Below are positions 31,977 to 40,952 of a stretch of 64,000 nucleotides of DNA, piece after piece. Position 1 is the stretch's first letter, and each line of letters begins with the position of its first letter. This stretch comes from Thecamonas trahens ATCC 50062 (Eukaryota > Protista > Apusomonadida). The stretch covers positions 1 to 64,000 of the forward strand of contig NW_013657673.1 in the NCBI RefSeq assembly GCF_000142905.1, read 5' to 3'. The translations under genes were made by a program, and so were the position numbers. The notes under the pieces were generated by a model. The model was given only the letters and a program-made list of their open reading frames with translations, was not told where the DNA came from and did not search any database.

Positions 31977-32706
31977 GACCGTATGGGTGCTTCCCGCTGA
32001 GGGTCGAGTCTGTCGCAGCGAGCGGCGCCAGCGTCAGTGGCGTCGTCGTCGCAGCCAGCTCGTCGCCCGGCTCGTCGGTCTCATCGAAGCCAGGCGCAGT
32101 CTTTTGCCGAGCACGCGGGTTTTTTGCCCATTGCAGGGCAGCATATTCTTTGAACTGTAACTCGCTATCGGATGGCAGTCTGCATGCGACATGGGCATGG
32201 TTGGGTAGCTGGTGTTGTAGAGATTGTTGCGATGTGATTGATGTTCACTGCACGCCACAGAGCAAACACAACATGCAAACTGTGTGTTCCATGGAACACT
32301 ATTTCCGTGATCAACCATTTTGACAAAGCCAGACAGCAGAGTCAGCGATCGCACCTCGAGAACCACCGTCACCTTTCCTTTTCTCTCTCTCTCCCTTCTA
32401 CACACCACTACCATACTCTCTGCTGCTACTTCCATCCCCTCGACCCGAAATCCGCACTCTAATCACAGTTTAGCCGGAAATCGGAACTTGTACGGCCTCG
32501 CCCTCTTGCTCTCCCCTCCCCTCGTCCCAAGCAATCAACCATGTCCACGCCTCTCCCTGCGATCCGCCTCTCCCATGTGGTCATGGCTCGCATGGCCTCC
32601 TCGATCGTCAGACTCATCTCCTCGAGCAGACGTCGCAACCACACGACGACGGCTTGAACGCCGAATGACCGGCGACTTTGGCTCACACCCCACTCTCACA
32701 GACACC

Positions 32707-34608
32707 ATGGTATGCGACCAGTCCCCAATGTCCCCGCCTCACCCCACCTTCACCCCTCCCCTCCCCCCCCGCCCCTCCCCTGCAATTGAACAGCAACTCA
32801 TGGTAGACCACATGTGCCACAGGCTGACAAGAAGGCATCCAAGGCGTTCCCGCTCGCCACCGACGAGCTCCATGCCACCATCCTGGACATGGTCCAGCAG
32901 GCCGCCAACTACCGCCAGCTGAAGAAGGGCGCTAACGAGGGTACGTACCACGAGTGTCAGCCTCCGTTTCCTTTCCCATCCCCATCCCCTCCATGCTCTT
33001 CATCCACCTCCCTGTCCCCTTTCTTCCACATCCCCATCCCTCCCTCTTTCCTGGGCTCCTCCTCTCCTTGCCCCCGTTGTCCCTGGCTGCGGCAGAGGGA
33101 CTCGCCGCCGTCTCCCCTTCCTCGCCCGCCAGCCTTCCCCGTCCGCCCGGCGTCTCCCTCTCCCTGCCCCCTGCACCCACCGAGTCCCCTTCCCCCTTCC
33201 CCTCCTCCCCCTCCCCCCTCCCCCCTCCCCCCCCCTCCCCCCACTGTACCCCCTCTCCTCCCTCCTCCTCCCTCCCCCCCCCCCCCGAGCGCACATACTT
33301 TTGGGATGGATTGTGATTTCCTTCCCACTTTCGGTTTGCCTCTCACTGGCACCACCGCCACCANNNNNNNNNNNNNNNNNNNNNNNNNNNNNNNNNNNNN
33401 NNNNNNNNNNNNNNNNNNNNNNNNNNNNNNNNNNNNNNNNNNNNNNNNNNNNNNNNNNNNNNNNNNNNNNNNNNNNNNNNNNNNNNNNNNNNNNNNNNNN
33501 NNNNNNNNNNNNNNNNNNNNNNNNNNNNNNNNNNNNNNNNNNNNNNNNNNNNNNNNNNNNNNNNNNNNNNNNNNNNNNNNNNNNNNNNNNNNNNNNNNNN
33601 NNNNNNNNNNNNNNNNNNNNNNNNNNNNNNNNNNNNNNNNNNNNNNNNNNNNNNNNNNNNNNNNNNNNNNNNNNNNNNNNNNNNNNNNNNNNNNNNNNNN
33701 NNNNNNNNNNNNNNNNNNNNNNNNNNNNNNNNNNNNNNNNNNNNNNNNNNNNNNNNNNNNNNNNNNNNNNNNNNNNNNNNNNNNNNNNNNNNNNNNNNNN
33801 NNNNNNNNNNNNNNNNNNNNNNNNNNNNNNNNNNNNNNNNNNNNNNNNNNNNNNNNNNNNNNNNNNNNNNNNNNNNNNNNNNNNNNNNNNNNNNNNNNNN
33901 NNNNNNNNNNNNNNNNNNNNNNNNNNNNNNNNNNNNNNNNNNNNNNNNNNNNNNNNNNNNNNNNNNNNNNNNNNNNNNNNNNNNNNNNNNNNNNNNNNNN
34001 NNNNNNNNNNNNNNATACTTGGTTGCCTCCCTGGACTGTGTCCCCGGCAAACAAAGCCTGTCATTTCTCGTAGGACCACTCTGCTTGGCTCATTCCGGCA
34101 GTCACAAAATTTTAATGCCATTCCCACCACCCACCCCCCCCCCCCTCCCCCACCACCACCATGACCACCCCCACCACCCTCACCCCGATCACATGCATTC
34201 CTCCGCTTCCATTTTATATCATTGCCCATGGCTGAATCATGGCTCATCTCGGACTCGTGGCCTTTGTTCCCTCCCCTCCCCTTTGGTTTATCGCCTTGCC
34301 CCTTCGCCGCACGGTACTCACCCCCCCCTTCTCCTCCTGCTACAGCGACCAAGACGCTCAACCGTGGTATTGCCGAGCTTGTGGTGATGGCTGCCGACAC
34401 CGAGCCGATCGAGATCCTTATGCACATTCCGCTCCTGTGCGAGGACAAGAACGTGCCGTACGTCTTTGTGGAGTCGCAGGCTGCGCTTGGCCGTGCCTGC
34501 GGTGTCTCCCGCCCGGTCATTGCTGCCTCCATCACCGTCTCGGACGGCTCGCAGCTCCAGACCCCGCTCAACAACCTCAAGGACGCCATCGAGCGCCTCC
34601 TCATCTAA
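32707..34608 (+). CDS. SNU13: Snu13/15.5K (box C/D snoRNP and U4 k-turn binding protein); exons 32707-32709, 32823-32940, 34346-34608
   Basis: M|[27 protein letters not shown]|[48 protein letters not shown]. Confidence 0.96.
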
Positions 34609-34812: not shown

Positions 34813-35961
34813 ATGGCGTCCTTCTCGGTCTCGACACGCCGCTCAAGCTTGTTATCTTTCTTGCGTACATGTCGTTGTGGACAGGCCTCCGTATCATCAT
34901 CTTTGCCTCGCAGCAAGGCAGCCAGTACAACACAGCCGCGGTGGTACGTCCTCGCTCCCCCCCCTTCCCTCGCCTTGCCCTCGCTTCACCCTCCTCTGTA
35001 CTCACATACCTTTATATATACATATATATGCACAAACACACATGTAGGTGCTCTGCATCGAGACTGTCAAGCTCCTGCTCGCAGCGCAGATGTTTGTGTC
35101 AAGGGATGGGACGTTCAGCGAGCTGCTCGCCCAGCTGAGCAAGCATCGGGCTCTCCTGGCAAAGTACTTTGTGCCAGCCTTCCTCTACTGCATCTACAAC
35201 AATCTTACCTTTACCGTCTTGTCGGTTGTCAATCCGTCGACTTACGCCATTCTGCAGCAGCTTAGGCTGGTGGTCACGGGATTGCTCTACGAGCGGTGCC
35301 TCTCCAGGCGGCTCTCACGGATGCAGTGGATCGCCATTGTCCTTCTCACCATCGGCTGTATGGTCAAGGAGGCCGACCAGTTCTCAACCAGCAGTAGTGT
35401 CTCGACGCGGACCACGCCTGTGACTATGTATCTGTTTATCCTGCTGCAGATCGCATGCGCTGTCGCTGCAGGCGTCTACAACGAGGTCCTGCTCAAGGAA
35501 GAGACCGGGACAAGCATCAATTTGCAGAACGTGTGCATGTATCTCAACTCGATCGTGTGCAACGTTTTGTTTATGGCCCTCGGCTTTGGCCGTTACTCCC
35601 TCGCCGAGGCCCTCGAGCCCGCAACATCCGCCCGCTCTTCTCCTTCTCGGTCTTCCCCATCATCCTCACCTACGCCTCCATCGGCATTGTCACCTCGATC
35701 TTCCTCAAGCACCTCAACTCGGTCCTCAAGACCATCGCCTCAGCCCTTGAGCTCTACGCCACCGCTGCCACCGCCCTCCTCCTCTTCGGCACTCCCATCG
35801 ATGGCTTTACGGTCATCTCGCTCATTCTCGTCTCAGGCGGCGTCTACATCTACTCGGCTTTCCCCCCGGATCCTAGCCCGCCTACACTCTCGCAGCCTGC
35901 CCGAAACGACGACGATGCCGACGCCGTCCTCACGGCCGGCAAGGGCGAGGTCTCGGTCTGA
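34813..35961 (+). CDS. Nucleotide-sugar transporter, SLC35A family; intron 34944-35047; frameshifts ~34823, ~35618
   Basis: YNTAAV|VLCIETVK, YFVPAFLYCIYNNL, TYAILQQLR, QWIAI, AGVYNEVLLK, NLQN, GIVTSIFLKHLNSVLK. Confidence 0.9.
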
Positions 35962-36268
35962 CTTGAACCTCTCCCCTCCCCTCCCCCTCTTCATTGCCAC
36001 TACATCTCGTCAACCCAGGCCCACCAGGCCCACCAGGCCCACTAGGCCCCCCATCCCTCCCTCTACCGCCCATGCTCACCAACTAGATCTTCAAAGCAAT
36101 CATATCCCACATTCCAAATCCCTCCTCCCCGCCCATTCTGCTCGCCGACCTGCCGTTGCCTGTCACCCGCTCTCCCCGCCCGCCTCCCACGCAAGCGCCC
36201 CCTCCCTCTCCCTGCACTCGCGAACACTGCACTTGCTCTAGAGAGACAAGAAGGCAAGGCGGGCAGCC

Positions 36269-39200
36269 ATGGGTAGCTACTTTCGGCCGTTGTCACCTAC
36301 CCGCTTCTCCACACGTCCAAGATACTCACTGGCGCCTTATGTGTCGCCAGAGCCGGCGCTCCTGGCCGACCTCCCGCGACTTGGTTCGCCGCCACCCGCA
36401 CATGGCTCGTCCTCGTCCCCAAACCACGACCCTTTTCGGGCAACGGCTCGTCAATCGTCACCCATTGCCTTGTACCACCACCGACAGGGACAATGGTCGG
36501 ATCGCCCGCTCTCAGAGTTCTCCCCGCCGCGTCACCGCCATCATACTCGTGATCACCGCCATCGCTCTCCCCTCCCGCCGCATGCATCGTTGTTGGCGAG
36601 ACCCAAGGAGACCCTCTCCGGCATGCGCCACATCGAGCAGGTGAGGTTGGCCCGTGAGCGCGAGGAGGCCCACCCGCCACCAGCCCGCCCGCGCAGCGTC
36701 AACTCGCCGCTCTTTGAGCTGGCGGATCGCAGCTCTCCGCCCGGCACCCGCTCGACGACAACGCCAACCGGCGGTGTTGCTGCGTCCGGCGTCGCGGGCC
36801 CGAGCGGAAGCCGCGGAAGCATAGCCGGGGCCAAGGCTGCCGAGCGGAGGCGGCGGCGGTCGCGCAGCTCGGCTCGGCGCGACTCGGCGCAGTCGGCGCG
36901 GTCGGCGCGGTCGGCGCGGTCGACACGGTCGTCGCTCCCGTCGACCGTCATCGAGCTCGACGAGGTGTCTGCCAGTTTTGGCGACGGATCGAGTTCCGAG
37001 GCTAGTGCTCAAGGCGAGTCGACCAGCTTGGCGCAGAGCGGCAAGCCGCGGTCGATCGCCTCTCTCCGCGCCCGGGAGGACTCGGCAGTTCTGGACGACT
37101 CGTGGTACGATCCACCGACGGTCAATCGGAGGCTTATGAGTCTCAAGCTGAGCCAAGAGCCGCGGCGCGACTCGATGTTTCTCGGCTCGACCGAGTTTGC
37201 GACGACGTCGTCGCCCGATGTTCGCTCCTCCAACGCAGACCTCAACATTCATCCACCGCGGCGGTACGCGTCGACGCTCTCAATTGGAGGGCACGGATTT
37301 GCGGCGACGGTCGCGCCCTCGGGCTCGCACATGTCGAAGAGCGGGTCGAGCTCGGAGCTCGGCTCGCTGCCGTTTGCGTCGGTTCCAGTCAACTCGGTGG
37401 TGTCGGGCGAGGACCAGTCACTTGTCGACCCATCGGGCCATCCAGTGGTGCTCAAGTCCGCGCTGCGGGCACGGGTCGACGGCGCGCTGGACTCCGTTGC
37501 CTACCTGGTAGTGGTCTCCATCGTCACACTCTATGTGCTCTACATCGACGACGCAATTGTGGTTGCTGGCCGAGAGCACACCGACGACACCAAGCGGATC
37601 ATCTTTGCCTTTCTTGTCCTCAAAGTTCTTGCCGCCTTTTCTTCCTCGGCGAGTTCATCGTCTTCAACTGGGCACGCCGCGAGACGTACCCGTTCTCGTT
37701 CTTCTTTTGGCTCGACATACTTGCGCTTGTCTCGTTTGTGCCGGACTTGCTCGAGCTCTTTGCTGGCATCACCTCGCTCGGCCTTGCCGGCTCGCTGGCA
37801 GTCTCGCGAGCCGGGCGGGCGGCGCAGGCGTCGTCGCGGGCGGTCCGCGCGTCGAAGCTCGCCAAAGCGCCTCTGGGCACGGTCGAGAACCAGATCGACG
37901 AGTTCAACCGCATGTCTGGCCTCGCCCGTCGGCCGTCGGCTCGCAGCTCATCCAGGTGACAACTAACAAGGTTACCGTCCTCGTCCTCCTTGTCTACTTT
38001 GCCTCTCTTCTCCTCCAGGTTGAGGCGCCACTCGAGGACCACGTCAAGGCCAACATCGAGGCGGTGGAGGCGACGATGCTCGCAGGCAGCAGCGGTGCTG
38101 CGCTCGTGGAGTCGACCCTCATTCCCGCGCTCAGCGCAGGCTACGGTTCGACAAATGTGGAGCTGCTGCACATGTGGTCGCTTGGTACACGGCTGGCCGG
38201 CTCGCAAGCTGCGGTCGACATGCTCAACCCGGTGTACGTGGTCAAGGTTGTGTCGTCGTCGAGGAACTCGGGCGCCGAGTACTCGGTCCGGCACACTGTC
38301 CGCCTCAACGCCGGCCTCAACATTGTGCTCATCACGATCCTGCTTGCTGCGCTCATTCTCGGCTCGTACCTCATATCCAAGGATGCGGACCGATTGATCA
38401 AGGTTGCCATTCACAAGATTACCCGCGCGCTCATGGCTGTCTTTGACAACATCTCGCGCAAGGCTGTCGAGCCGGTTCCCACCGTGTCGGGCGGTGGGTT
38501 GGCGTCGGTGTCGGAGAAAAGGCTTCCGGTAGCGGCGAGAACTCTGAAGCCACTGTCCTGCTCAACATGCTCAACACCATTGGTGAGCGGGCCGGCTCAG
38601 ACGCGGCGCTCGTCCGCAGGCTTCGGCAGCAGCGCGAAGAGTACCTGGTAGCTGCCAAGCGGATGGAGATGGAGCTCCGGCAGTGGCGGCGGACCAAGCC
38701 GACCGCTCACATCGGGCGAGTCCCTCTGTTCTCGCGCGAGACCGAAGGCTCGGACCCGCTCTCCAGCGAGTGGATTGTCTTTGCCGACGAGTCGACCGAG
38801 CTGTCGGGCGCAGCTATCAACGCGGCGCTCGACGCTGTTGTTTCTGCGCTCGGCGAAGTCCCGCAGAGCGAGGCGCTGGCCAAGGTCGTGCTCTCGGGCT
38901 CGGTGCCGGGCCTTGTCGGCTGGCTCGTCTCGGACCTCCAGCCGCTACCGTTTGTTCCCCCAGGCGAGGTCCTCGACTACACATACGTACTCATGGTCAA
39001 CTACCGGTCGTTCATGGACCCGGCAGCGCTGCTGGAAGACCTCATCATGGCATACTGCCGCGCACCACCCAAGGTCACCGCATCGCAGCACAGGCTGATC
39101 GAAGAAGGCATCACGCCCGAGGAGATGCGGCTGGTCCGCGAAATGTTTGCAAGGTTTGATGCCGACGGCAACGGCACGCTCTCGCGCGACGAGATGGCCA

Positions 39201-40435
39201 TGGTTCTCTCCGAGCTCGATCGTGGGTGCACGCCCGAGGATGTCGAGACGCTGATGACCGAGCTCGACGAGGACCAGTCGGGCGAAATCGACTTTGACGA
39301 GTTTTTCAATGGCCTCACCAGCCTCATCTCCAGCCGCGAGGCGGCGCTCGAGGCGTGGAAGACTGACGTGCTGGAGCCACTCCGCCGCAGGGTTGCCCTC
39401 GTCCTCGAGTACTGGATCACCCAGTTTACCTCGGACTTTGTCACCTCGCCCGACTTGCTCGCGCTGGCCGAGACCTTCCTCGGCCTGTTCATGCCCGAGA
39501 CCGGCATGGAGGCCGAGGGCGACGCGCTGCTGAACCTGCTTGATTCGGTGCTGTCGCGGGCGGCGAGCGCAAACGCAGCGCACGTCGGTGTCCGCCTCGA
39601 CACCGGCCTTCCGCCCCTGCCGCGGATGTCAGGCGGCGCGGCCGACGCACTGTTGGCGGCCGACCCGGTGGAGATTGCGCGCCAGCTGACGCTGGTCGAC
39701 GCCCGGCTGTACGGGGCCATCCAGCGGACCGAGCTCGTCGACGGCGCGCACATGTCCGAGAACAAGAACGTGCGCGCACCCAACGTGTCGGCGCTTGTCG
39801 CTCAGCACAATGCAGTCTCGCGGTGGGTCGAGGCATCGATCCTTGCACCAACCAAGATCAAGGAGCGGGTGGCGGTCATCAAGCTCTTTGTCCACACCAT
39901 GGTCGCTTGCTCGCAGCTCTCCAACTTTAATGGCGTCATGGCCATCTACGCCGCGCTCCAGGGCACCGCCATCGATCGGCTGCGCAAAACATGGGCCAAG
40001 GTTCCCAAGGACGTCATGTCCGAGCTCGAGGCCGTCGGCGCCCTCATGAGCTACGAGAAGAACTTCAAGGCGTACCGCAGCCATGTTGCGGAGCTCACCG
40101 GGCCCTCAGTCCCATACCTCGGCATTTACTTCAAGGACCTCATCGGAGTCGACGAGGGCAACGAGAAGCGGACCGCGAACGGGTTCATCAACATGGAAAA
40201 GTGCTACCTCACCGCCTTTACCATCTCGGAGCTCCTTCGCTGGCAGCCCGAGACCTCAGCGTATACCTTTGTCGGCATCGATGAGGTCCAGGCGCTCTGG
40301 CGCGAGTTCTTTGAGCCCGCCGACCTCCGCCTCCCGCTCGGCTTTGATGTCGAGCCCGGATGGGTGCCGTCGCCGCCGACTGAAGATGATCTATTCAAGC
40401 TCTCGCTCGAGCGCGAGCCGCGGGTTAAGCGGTGA
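36269..40435 (+). CDS. Multi-TM voltage-sensor-like module + EF-hand-interrupted REM + CDC25 RasGEF (~1390 aa after three +1 homopolymer repairs at ~37638, ~37926, ~38497)
   Basis: TM segments with FFFWLD (S3-like) and RAGRAAQASSRAVRASKLAK (S4-like); REM YRSFMDP..RRRVALVLEYWI; EF loops DADGNGTLSRDE and DEDQSGEIDFDE; CDC25 EIARQLTL, NFNGVMAI, RLRKTW, VPYLGIYFKDL, FINMEK. Confidence 0.85.
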
Positions 40436-40490
40436 TGCGCATGTTGCAAGAACGGCGACACAGCTGGCTTTACTGCGGCGGCAAAAGTAA

Positions 40491-40952
40491 CTACTCCATC
40501 ATCTCAATCTGCATCGGCTCCTCTTCGTCCTTGCCCTTGCCACCGTCAGTCGGCTCGGGCTTGGGAATGACGAGCTTGATCGAGTTGTCGGGCGCACGAG
40601 TGGCGGTCACCGTCTCGGGGTTGACTCCGGTCGGAAGAGGGAACGAGCGCGAGAACGACGAGAACGATGACTGCGAGCAGGTGAAGCCGTCGACCTCCTT
40701 GGTCGACGAGTGTTCGTCCGAGCCCGAAATCGTCACGTTGCCGTCCTTGATCGAGAGCTTGACCTTGTCACGCGGAACAGGCAGATGCGCCACAACCTCG
40801 TATGCTGTATCCTTCTCGCTTACATTAAACGAGAGCCGCGAGTGCGGCGTCGACGTCGTCACCGCACGCGAGTGCGGCGACCGCACAGAGCCGACGTGTT
40901 CAAAGACCGGCCAGTCGTCCCAGAGCCACGAGCGGAACGGAGAGAGCATCAT
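40491..40952 (-). CDS. Small heat-shock protein (Hsp20/alpha-crystallin)
   Basis: FNVSEKDTAYEVVAHLP..VTISG..SFSRSFPLP..V.PETVTA..IKLVIPK. Confidence 0.92.
   Translation of the reverse strand: MMLSPFRSWLWDDWPVFEHVGSVRSPHSRAVTTSTPHSRLSFNVSEKDTAYEVVAHLPVPRDKVKLSIKDGNVTISGSDEHSSTKEVDGFTCSQSSFSSFSRSFPLPTGVNPETVTATRAPDNSIKLVIPKPEPTDGGKGKDEEEPMQIEMME

Follow-up and report, generated by a model that had tools for sequence, protein, structure and literature searches.

A putative voltage-sensor module joined to a Ras exchange factor in the apusomonad Thecamonas trahens

The gene described here occupies positions 36269-40435 (+) of a 64,000-nucleotide stretch of DNA from the marine flagellate Thecamonas trahens ATCC 50062 (RefSeq assembly GCF_000142905.1, contig NW_013657673.1, positions 1 to 64,000 of the forward strand), which we call the window. 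It is a single gene, and its product consists, from the N- to the C-terminus, of a probably disordered region, the transmembrane (TM) helices S1-S4, TM5, an outer domain of ~95 residues, TM6 with a stalk helix, a likely coiled coil, a REM domain with an inserted EF-hand pair, and the catalytic CDC25 domain of a Ras guanine nucleotide exchange factor (RasGEF). Judged by sequence, charge pattern and predicted fold, S1-S4 is homologous to voltage-sensor domains (VSDs). The best explanation is, in our view, a plasma-membrane RasGEF of ~1389 residues with a two-part module, composed of a VSD and a dimer of TM5, outer domain, TM6 and stalk, in which voltage would control the loading of Ras or Rap; we lean towards this proposal with modest confidence.

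Continuity of the gene

In the assembly the coding sequence is spread over four overlapping open frames in succession, namely A (36269..~37640), B (~37636-37925), C (37926-~38519) and D (~38516-40435), with a -1 frame shift at each break in the homopolymers T4 (37637-37640), C3 (37925-37927) and A4 (38517-38520). We compared positions 35000-40600 with contigs of four public runs (X1, X3, X7 and X9) from at least three studies, comprising two samples of the organism (2010 and 2020), an estuary metagenome and a marine metagenome. Every contig crossing the first site (X1, X3, X7) has an extra T behind 37636. At the second site an extra C behind 37924 is present in X3, and an X9 contig that stops at 37927 has a loose end made of C and the window bases that follow. 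An extra A behind 38516 is found at the third site in all four runs and in every crossing contig. As the contigs of the four runs carry the missing T, C and A, the three frame breaks are one-base homopolymer deletions of the assembly. With these bases added there is no internal stop through 1389 codons, and the stop codon lies at 40433-40435. This corrected, joined protein was used only for counting stops and locating motifs; profile searches were run on the separate pieces, and folding on the intact orthologue.

A first-pass annotation, made from the DNA letters, had assumed a single reading frame after three homopolymer repairs, and the reads, an intact orthologue and intact paralogues bear this out. 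The motifs it quoted (VTLYVLYIDD, FFLGEF, YPFSFFFWLDIL, SRAGRAAQASSRAVRASKLAK, SAVGSQLIQVTTNKVTVLVL, LNIVL..SKDADRLI..IHKI and EATVLLNMLNTIG) are all there and in the order given. The orthologue, P0007 (L024:995-4402), is an intact protein of 1135 residues from Tara Oceans and other marine metagenome contigs. It is collinear with pieces A-B-C-D, with 66-82% identity over B-D and 37% over the alignable end of A, and runs uninterrupted across the first two junctions as the corrections predict (…AFFFFLVEF… and …NRMSGLAPSQIG…). In the T. trahens genome (28.7 Mb, 131 contigs) the membrane module occurs at least ten times, and the species has seven versions of the RasGEF type. Four paralogues are uninterrupted open reading frames of 1184-1399 residues with the order module, RasGEF_N, RasGEF, and two more RasGEF copies are located on contigs C32 and C37.

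Were the frame breaks real, the locus would be a pseudogene or two genes, one for a membrane protein and one for a RasGEF. The three breaks in the assembly as given would fit such a reading, as would the fact that none of the runs holding the gene is on record as RNA. Against it stand the extra base in every contig covering the sites, the same type of error in a neighbouring gene and the intact state of orthologue and paralogues. The reads and the intact relatives rule this reading out, and we consider it scarcely credible.

The neighbouring gene, which encodes a nucleotide-sugar transporter (35048-35961, +), is also frame-broken, with an extra C behind 35617 in all four runs, and one run has an extra C behind position 36197 in the spacer. 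One-base homopolymer deletions seem to be common in the T. trahens assembly. A contig joint 36879>37817 was considered as splicing and rejected: it occurs in one estuary-metagenome contig, has seven other letters in between and a shorter side of 21 letters, and it probably stems from another organism or a paralogue. Elsewhere in the window, GC content falls to 0.415 at 32001-34000, compared with ~0.6-0.7 in most other 2-kb bins.

Domain organization

The features of the gene, all on the + strand, are as follows.
36269..40435 (+): whole coding sequence, 1389 codons plus stop once the three missing homopolymer bases are counted
36269..37495 (+): low-complexity N-terminal region of ~409 residues, cytosolic and probably disordered, from the translation; no Pfam family
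37496..37567 (+): S1 helix, ending in a conserved DD (D34 in 92% of the family)
37589..37677 (+): S2 helix, with the F-x-x-E motif as FLGE (F65 in 97%, E68 in 89% of the family)
37637-37640 (+): assembly gap 1, T4 run within S2, T5 in the reads
37687..37767 (+): S3 helix, YPFSFFFWLDIL, with a conserved Asp (D89 in 98% of the family)
37783..37869 (+): S4 helix, SRAGRAAQASSRAVRASKLAK; of the eight family positions, three residues apart, six are basic and the third is Q
37879..37927 (+): short S4-TM5 linker helix in the predicted model, including gap 2
37925-37927 (+): assembly gap 2, C3 run, C4 in the reads
37944..38021 (+): TM5, QLIQVTTNKVTVLVLLVYFASLLLQV, predicted to contribute to the dimer interface
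38022..38315 (+): outer domain, extracytoplasmic and ~95 residues long, of alpha/beta type in the secondary structure of the model, with a likeness to histidine-kinase sensors; without pore loop
38316..38462 (+): TM6 running into a long cytosolic stalk helix (SKDADRLIKVAIHKI…), from the model, with heptad-spaced predicted contacts
38517-38520 (+): assembly gap 3, A4 run, A5 in all four runs
38546..38596 (+): cytosolic helix EATVLLNMLNTIG, conserved ahead of all types of output domain in the family comparison
38606..38692 (+): charged helix ALVRRLRQQREEYLVAAKRMEMELRQWRR, likely a coiled coil, judged from the sequence
38888..39478 (+): REM domain (RasGEF_N, Pfam PF00618, E 9.3e-12, residues 108-304 of piece D), split by the insert
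39134..39316 (+): calmodulin-like EF-hand pair inside REM (Pfam EF-hand_1/EF-hand_7), both loops canonical (DADGNGTLSRDE, DEDQSGEIDFDE)
39671..40204 (+): CDC25-type RasGEF catalytic domain (Pfam PF00617, E 2.5e-53, profile positions 1-180 of 181)

Only the last ~180 residues of the N-terminal region can be aligned to the orthologue, with the 37% identity given above. In the membrane part, each of the pieces can be aligned with the paralogues. Pfam finds RasGEF_N and RasGEF in piece D, which agrees with the annotated succession of a low-complexity N-terminus, TM helices, REM and CDC25. With a REM domain followed by a full-length CDC25 domain, the C-terminal part is assigned to the CDC25 family, and SOS1 is the closest solved relative of the catalytic part (E 2.7e-33). 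The EF-hand insert matches calmodulin or its lobes in the PDB. It is shared with the marine orthologue P0007 and is absent from the other paralogues and the dictyostelid proteins that were checked.

The S1-S4 part is a voltage-sensor homologue

Eight positions of S4 have K or R in 80-97% of 102 family sequences. They follow one another at intervals of three residues, one interval being four, and the residues in between are almost never K or R. The counter-charges are similarly conserved in these sequences (S2 Phe 97%, S2 Glu 89%, S3 Asp 98%, S1 Asp 92%). The window protein retains D33, D34, F65, E68, Y80 and D89 as well as six of the eight S4 charges, its residues at the family positions being R, R, Q, R, R, K, K. 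From their position, the residues in S1, S2 and S3 would act as a charge-transfer centre and an outer acidic site.

Of 57 family members, 37 match the Pfam family Ion_trans at E<=0.001 (best 3.3e-10), in every case within the S1-S4 part of the profile, and four members scanned singly lie above the 25-bit cut-off (P0111 with 32.7, P0124 with 27.3, P0061 with 26.8 and P0016 with 26.6 bits). In a comparison of the paralogue profile with the PDB, Hv1 was the top match (E 0.0022), followed by the sensors of Kv1.2 and Nav. For the fold, the module of the intact orthologue (L024) was modelled with AlphaFold2 in place of the window protein; the model obtained with the 102-sequence alignment reached a pLDDT of 86.5 and a pTM of 0.81, and an earlier run on a six-sequence alignment (pLDDT 56) was set aside. 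In the model, S1-S4 is followed by a short linker helix and TM5, then by ~95 residues with an alpha/beta fold and by TM6, which continues into a long stalk helix; the S1-S4 part has the four-helix fold of VSDs. An exhaustive VIA structural search returned the crystal structure of the Ci-VSP sensor as the top match (Z 14.1 over 131 of 136 residues, root-mean-square deviation (rmsd) 2.8 A), at a level, Z 13-14, that helical bundles may reach by chance; ~45 further rows were nearly all voltage sensors. Foldseek against the PDB returned almost exclusively voltage-gated channels, yet with weak E-values of at least 0.078. We regard the fold comparison as supportive, not decisive on its own. Together with the PDB profile search it speaks for the VSD homology that had been suggested for the TM region.

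Besides the limits of these two fold searches, several observations on the window protein weigh against the proposed explanation. The Pfam scan of the four window pieces gave no TM family match for the membrane part, and the best T. trahens paralogue, L019, stays just below the Ion_trans cut-off (23.6 bits, E 3.5e-5). S4 of the window protein is unusually polar, as Ala and Ser separate its charges. The third charge position is occupied by Q, the eighth charge is missing, and this helix was modelled with only moderate confidence (pLDDT 59-80).

The TM5-TM6 half is predicted to be a dimeric transducer without a pore

Neither the paralogue alignment nor the family consensus nor the model contains a pore loop or a conserved filter motif between TM5 and TM6. 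A K+ pore was considered and rejected, as the GYG at ~38140 belongs to the outer domain and lacks conservation in the paralogues. Channel matches to the model cover the VSD only, or have an rmsd of ~14-15 A when stretched across the whole model. The first-pass annotation had read this half as ion-channel-like, in particular K+-channel-like; with an alpha/beta outer domain in place of a pore loop between TM5 and TM6, this part of the reading is not supported. An ion or proton pathway through the module (Hv1-like, omega-current-like or a K+ conductance), with the GEF anchored beside it or regulated by the local flux, would be in line with Hv1 being the best sequence match among solved structures and with the K+ conductance reported for the purified Paramecium cyclase, as cited in PMC12414865 and PMC10651576. 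We consider such a pathway improbable in view of the missing pore loop and filter motif and the single, unconserved GYG; the Phytophthora relatives likewise have no pore-helix homology (PMC12223298).

In the ESM Atlas, residues 150-339 of the module resemble bacterial histidine-kinase modules of the type TM-sensor-TM-HAMP, and the predicted TM5-TM6 half resembles a dimeric sensor of the histidine-kinase type. A homodimer prediction gave a score of 0.41, compared with 0.00 for the best control. Among proteins solved as pairs of one chain, 21 of 30 attained this mark, but none of 23 did among those solved as single chains; for eukaryotic proteins the numbers were 17 of 29 and none of 30. Contact agreement between the dimer runs was at least 55% and the partner pLDDT at least 62. 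The module is therefore predicted to form a dimer, with an interface made of TM5, the outer helices and the heptad positions of TM6 and stalk, and with the sensors at the periphery. The fold of the complete module is also seen in stand-alone proteins of Spirochaetota, ~340-380 residues long (ESM Atlas clusters, TM-score 0.66-0.68), a hint that the unit of VSD and sensor may have originated in prokaryotes or have a relative there.

The main rival to voltage control arises from this half of the protein. The outer domain may bind an external ligand and signal through the TM5/TM6 dimer and the stalk, with S1-S4 as an accessory, of structural or modulatory use, that has ceased to report voltage. 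Such a ligand-gated receptor would agree with the histidine-kinase likeness of residues 150-339, with a predicted dimer interface lying wholly in the TM5-TM6 half, with the outer domain being a folded alpha/beta unit in the model, and with the decay of S4 charges in dictyostelid and some Thecamonas copies. However, nothing in the module is better conserved in more than 100 sequences than the charge periodicity of S4 and the S2/S3 counter-charges, for which a passive scaffold would not easily account, and the outer domain is poorly conserved across relatives. We therefore regard ligand gating as unlikely, if clearly less so than an ion pathway, and prefer a module that is controlled by voltage.

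The module is shared with cyclases and other signalling proteins

When 1.84 billion representatives were searched with a profile of the module, 2613 relatives emerged, of which 1156 reached E<=1e-10. Among the best 150, 105 have a C-terminus resembling class III cyclases and 12 have a RasGEF. The cyclase-type members, with profile E-values down to ~1e-47, come from a euglenid, a ciliate, a green alga and Rhodelphis, and a cluster of apicomplexan 'adenylyl cyclase alpha' (ACalpha) shares the fold (TM-score 0.74). The motifs that the first-pass annotation had named for the cyclase module, FFFWLD, RAGRxxR, VGxxLxxxTT and DAxxL, all belong to the family consensus. These motifs, the apicomplexan ACalpha fold and cyclase-type paralogues in the genome itself support its view that the sensor module is that of protist adenylyl cyclases of the channel or VSD type. 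A Pfam scan of the four pieces of the window gene gave no Guanylate_cyc match. By these comparisons, the gene shares the input module of the ACalpha type and is not a member of the cyclase family.

The proposed swap of output, RasGEF for cyclase, gains support from the occurrence of the same module mostly on class III cyclases. In a tree of the module, all RasGEF types lie on one side and the cyclase types on the other side of a branch with SH-like support of 97; the tree was calculated with FastTree, is midpoint-rooted and has several long branches. An old swap of output fits this tree, and a single event is consistent with it, though not proven.

Cyclase and RasGEF are two of several outputs. 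The module precedes RhoGEF and PH domains (P0016, P0027, P0061) or an RGS domain (P0051, P0065, P0092, P0124), follows a phosphodiesterase (P0111, P0127), and is accompanied by an SH3 domain only in L022:2807-5179 and P0011. From its domain partners the module appears to behave as an interchangeable input for many signalling outputs. Behind the stalk, a helix of the pattern E-T/A-x-x-L-L-x-x-L is found in most of the cyclase, RhoGEF and RGS members checked, in about half of the RasGEF ones and in the window gene (EATVLLNMLNTIG). Because this helix recurs across output types, it points to a common transmission device.

The T. trahens paralogues include divergent members of both types. In the RasGEF-type paralogue L023:3494-7558:+ (contig C65, AMSG_10857), F and E of S2 are replaced by L and Q and D of S3 by E, and three S4 charges are present, so that this protein may serve as a natural 'sensor-dead' comparison. 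Two paralogues are cyclase-like, L021:3078-5894:- (C53) and L028:3950-6466:+ (C18). Since Pfam Guanylate_cyc was not called on either of them, and since L021 has E and S in place of the Asp of the family consensus motifs FCDIR and GDAF, they may be inactive pseudo-cyclases.

RasGEF versions in other protists

Proteins in which the module is joined to a RasGEF also occur beyond Thecamonas, in dictyostelids, Ceratiomyxa and the nucleariid Lithocolla, so that the architecture is conserved in other protists, where the first-pass annotation had proposed to look for it. The full-length homologues of Lithocolla and Ceratiomyxa derive from transcriptome assemblies, and both halves are therefore on one mRNA in these organisms. 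The dictyostelid copies keep the acidic and aromatic residues of S1, S2 and S3 and have 3-4 S4 charges only. The word-indexed homologue searches, which found few relatives, did not return an orthologue from Dictyostelium discoideum AX4.

The literature on this combination is sparse. Full-text searches yielded no paper on a voltage sensor linked to a RasGEF. The Pfam family PF26726, 'Helical_RasGEFs', has precomputed matches on dictyostelid RasGEF-type and on cyclase-type relatives, and none among the precomputed entries of the orthologue P0007. As PF26726 is recorded on dictyostelid RasGEFs, curators had noted a helical domain in RasGEFs and the architecture is not wholly unseen. The earlier statement that no characterised protein has this design stands as far as published work on the fusion is concerned, and has to be qualified for the architecture itself. 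In a survey of Dictyostelium RasGEFs, TM bars are drawn in a figure without discussion (PMC1273635).

Enzymes coupled to a VSD have precedents in voltage-sensing phosphatases (VSP), SLC9C1 and the Paramecium/Plasmodium cyclase (PMC10651576), the fusion in the cyclase going back to Weber et al. 2004 as cited in PMC10651576 and PMC12414865. A paper on Phytophthora zoospores from 2025 describes VSD-cyclase proteins without a pore helix (PMC12223298).

Discussion

The window gene combines features of several known systems. The VSD-type adenylyl and guanylyl cyclases of protists (those of Paramecium and Tetrahymena and Plasmodium ACalpha, through Weber et al. 2004 as cited in PMC10651576, and Phytophthora PPTG_13136 and PPTG_13761, in PMC12223298) have the same S1-S4, TM5, outer domain, TM6, stalk and 'ETxxLE' helix, and differ in their output, a class III cyclase in place of REM-CDC25 with an EF-hand pair. 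Like Ci-VSP, whose sensor ranks first among the solved structures compared with S1-S4, the window protein has a pore-less VSD and a cytosolic enzyme. In Ci-VSP, however, S4 is coupled directly to the enzyme by a short linker, whereas the window protein has two further TM helices, the outer domain and a long stalk between sensor and enzyme, is predicted to be a dimer and has a GEF as its output. The dictyostelid RasGEFs with PF26726 (for example Cavenderia fasciculata XP_004358992 and Dictyostelium purpureum XP_003291660) have the same module and RasGEF but fewer S4 charges and no EF-hand insert.

With bacterial sensor histidine kinases (TM, periplasmic domain, TM, HAMP or stalk) the TM5-TM6 half shares topology and predicted fold, and in the predicted dimer the two copies meet along both TM helices and the stalk. 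This likeness is known from the predicted fold and not from sequence; no HAMP or kinase domain was detected in the window protein, and a VSD is placed in front. The unit of REM and CDC25 is shared with SOS, RasGRF and RasGRP, and the EF-hands recall the calcium input of RasGRP and RasGRF. While these proteins are soluble and recruited to the membrane, the GEF of the window would be an integral membrane protein with EF-hands inside REM.

We propose that a change in membrane potential would move the charged S4 helix, and that the S4-TM5 linker would carry this movement to the TM5/TM6 dimer core. From there it may continue down the stalk and the conserved 'ExxLLxxL' helix and shift the position or the autoinhibition of REM-CDC25, so that the loading of Ras or Rap at the membrane would track voltage. 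Calcium on the EF-hand pair within REM could act as a second input. For voltage control of Ras exchange as such, we judge the chances to be roughly even.

Further points have to be set against this proposal. RasGEFs need no dimerisation, and the proposal would require a stalk movement to gate the CDC25 domain. Voltage sensing may not be general among RasGEF types, because the dictyostelid copies have 3-4 S4 charges and L023 is degenerate. Moreover, even the related cyclase was not shown to be voltage-gated as a recombinant protein (PMC10651576), and the gene itself is present in no run on record as RNA.

The module may have a wider meaning. Relatives of the window protein could form a largely undescribed class of voltage-regulated signalling enzymes in eukaryotes, in which a dimeric transducer turns membrane potential into RasGEF, RhoGEF, RGS, phosphodiesterase or cyclase activity; we put this forward tentatively and with some doubt. 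To our knowledge, direct drive by a voltage sensor is accepted for only a few classes of enzymes or transporters: the phosphatase VSP and the exchanger SLC9C1, with the protist cyclase on less firm ground. Coupling of a voltage sensor to an enzyme is thus already known; new here is the RasGEF output, and the wider family is mostly undescribed.

The family is amenable to testing, as it has intact members and occurs in dictyostelids, to which the genetically tractable Dictyostelium discoideum belongs. Natural controls are at hand in paralogues whose S4 charges have decayed and in sister proteins that carry a cyclase, RhoGEF, RGS or phosphodiesterase as output, and voltage-controlled Ras or Rho tools are a possible yield. 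If our proposal is true, membrane potential would be tied to a central switch of growth and motility in eukaryotic cells without calcium or channels in between. On the wider, more tentative reading of a whole enzyme class, small-GTPase signalling of apusomonads, dictyostelids and nucleariids would be gated by voltage directly, with motility or electrotaxis as examples.

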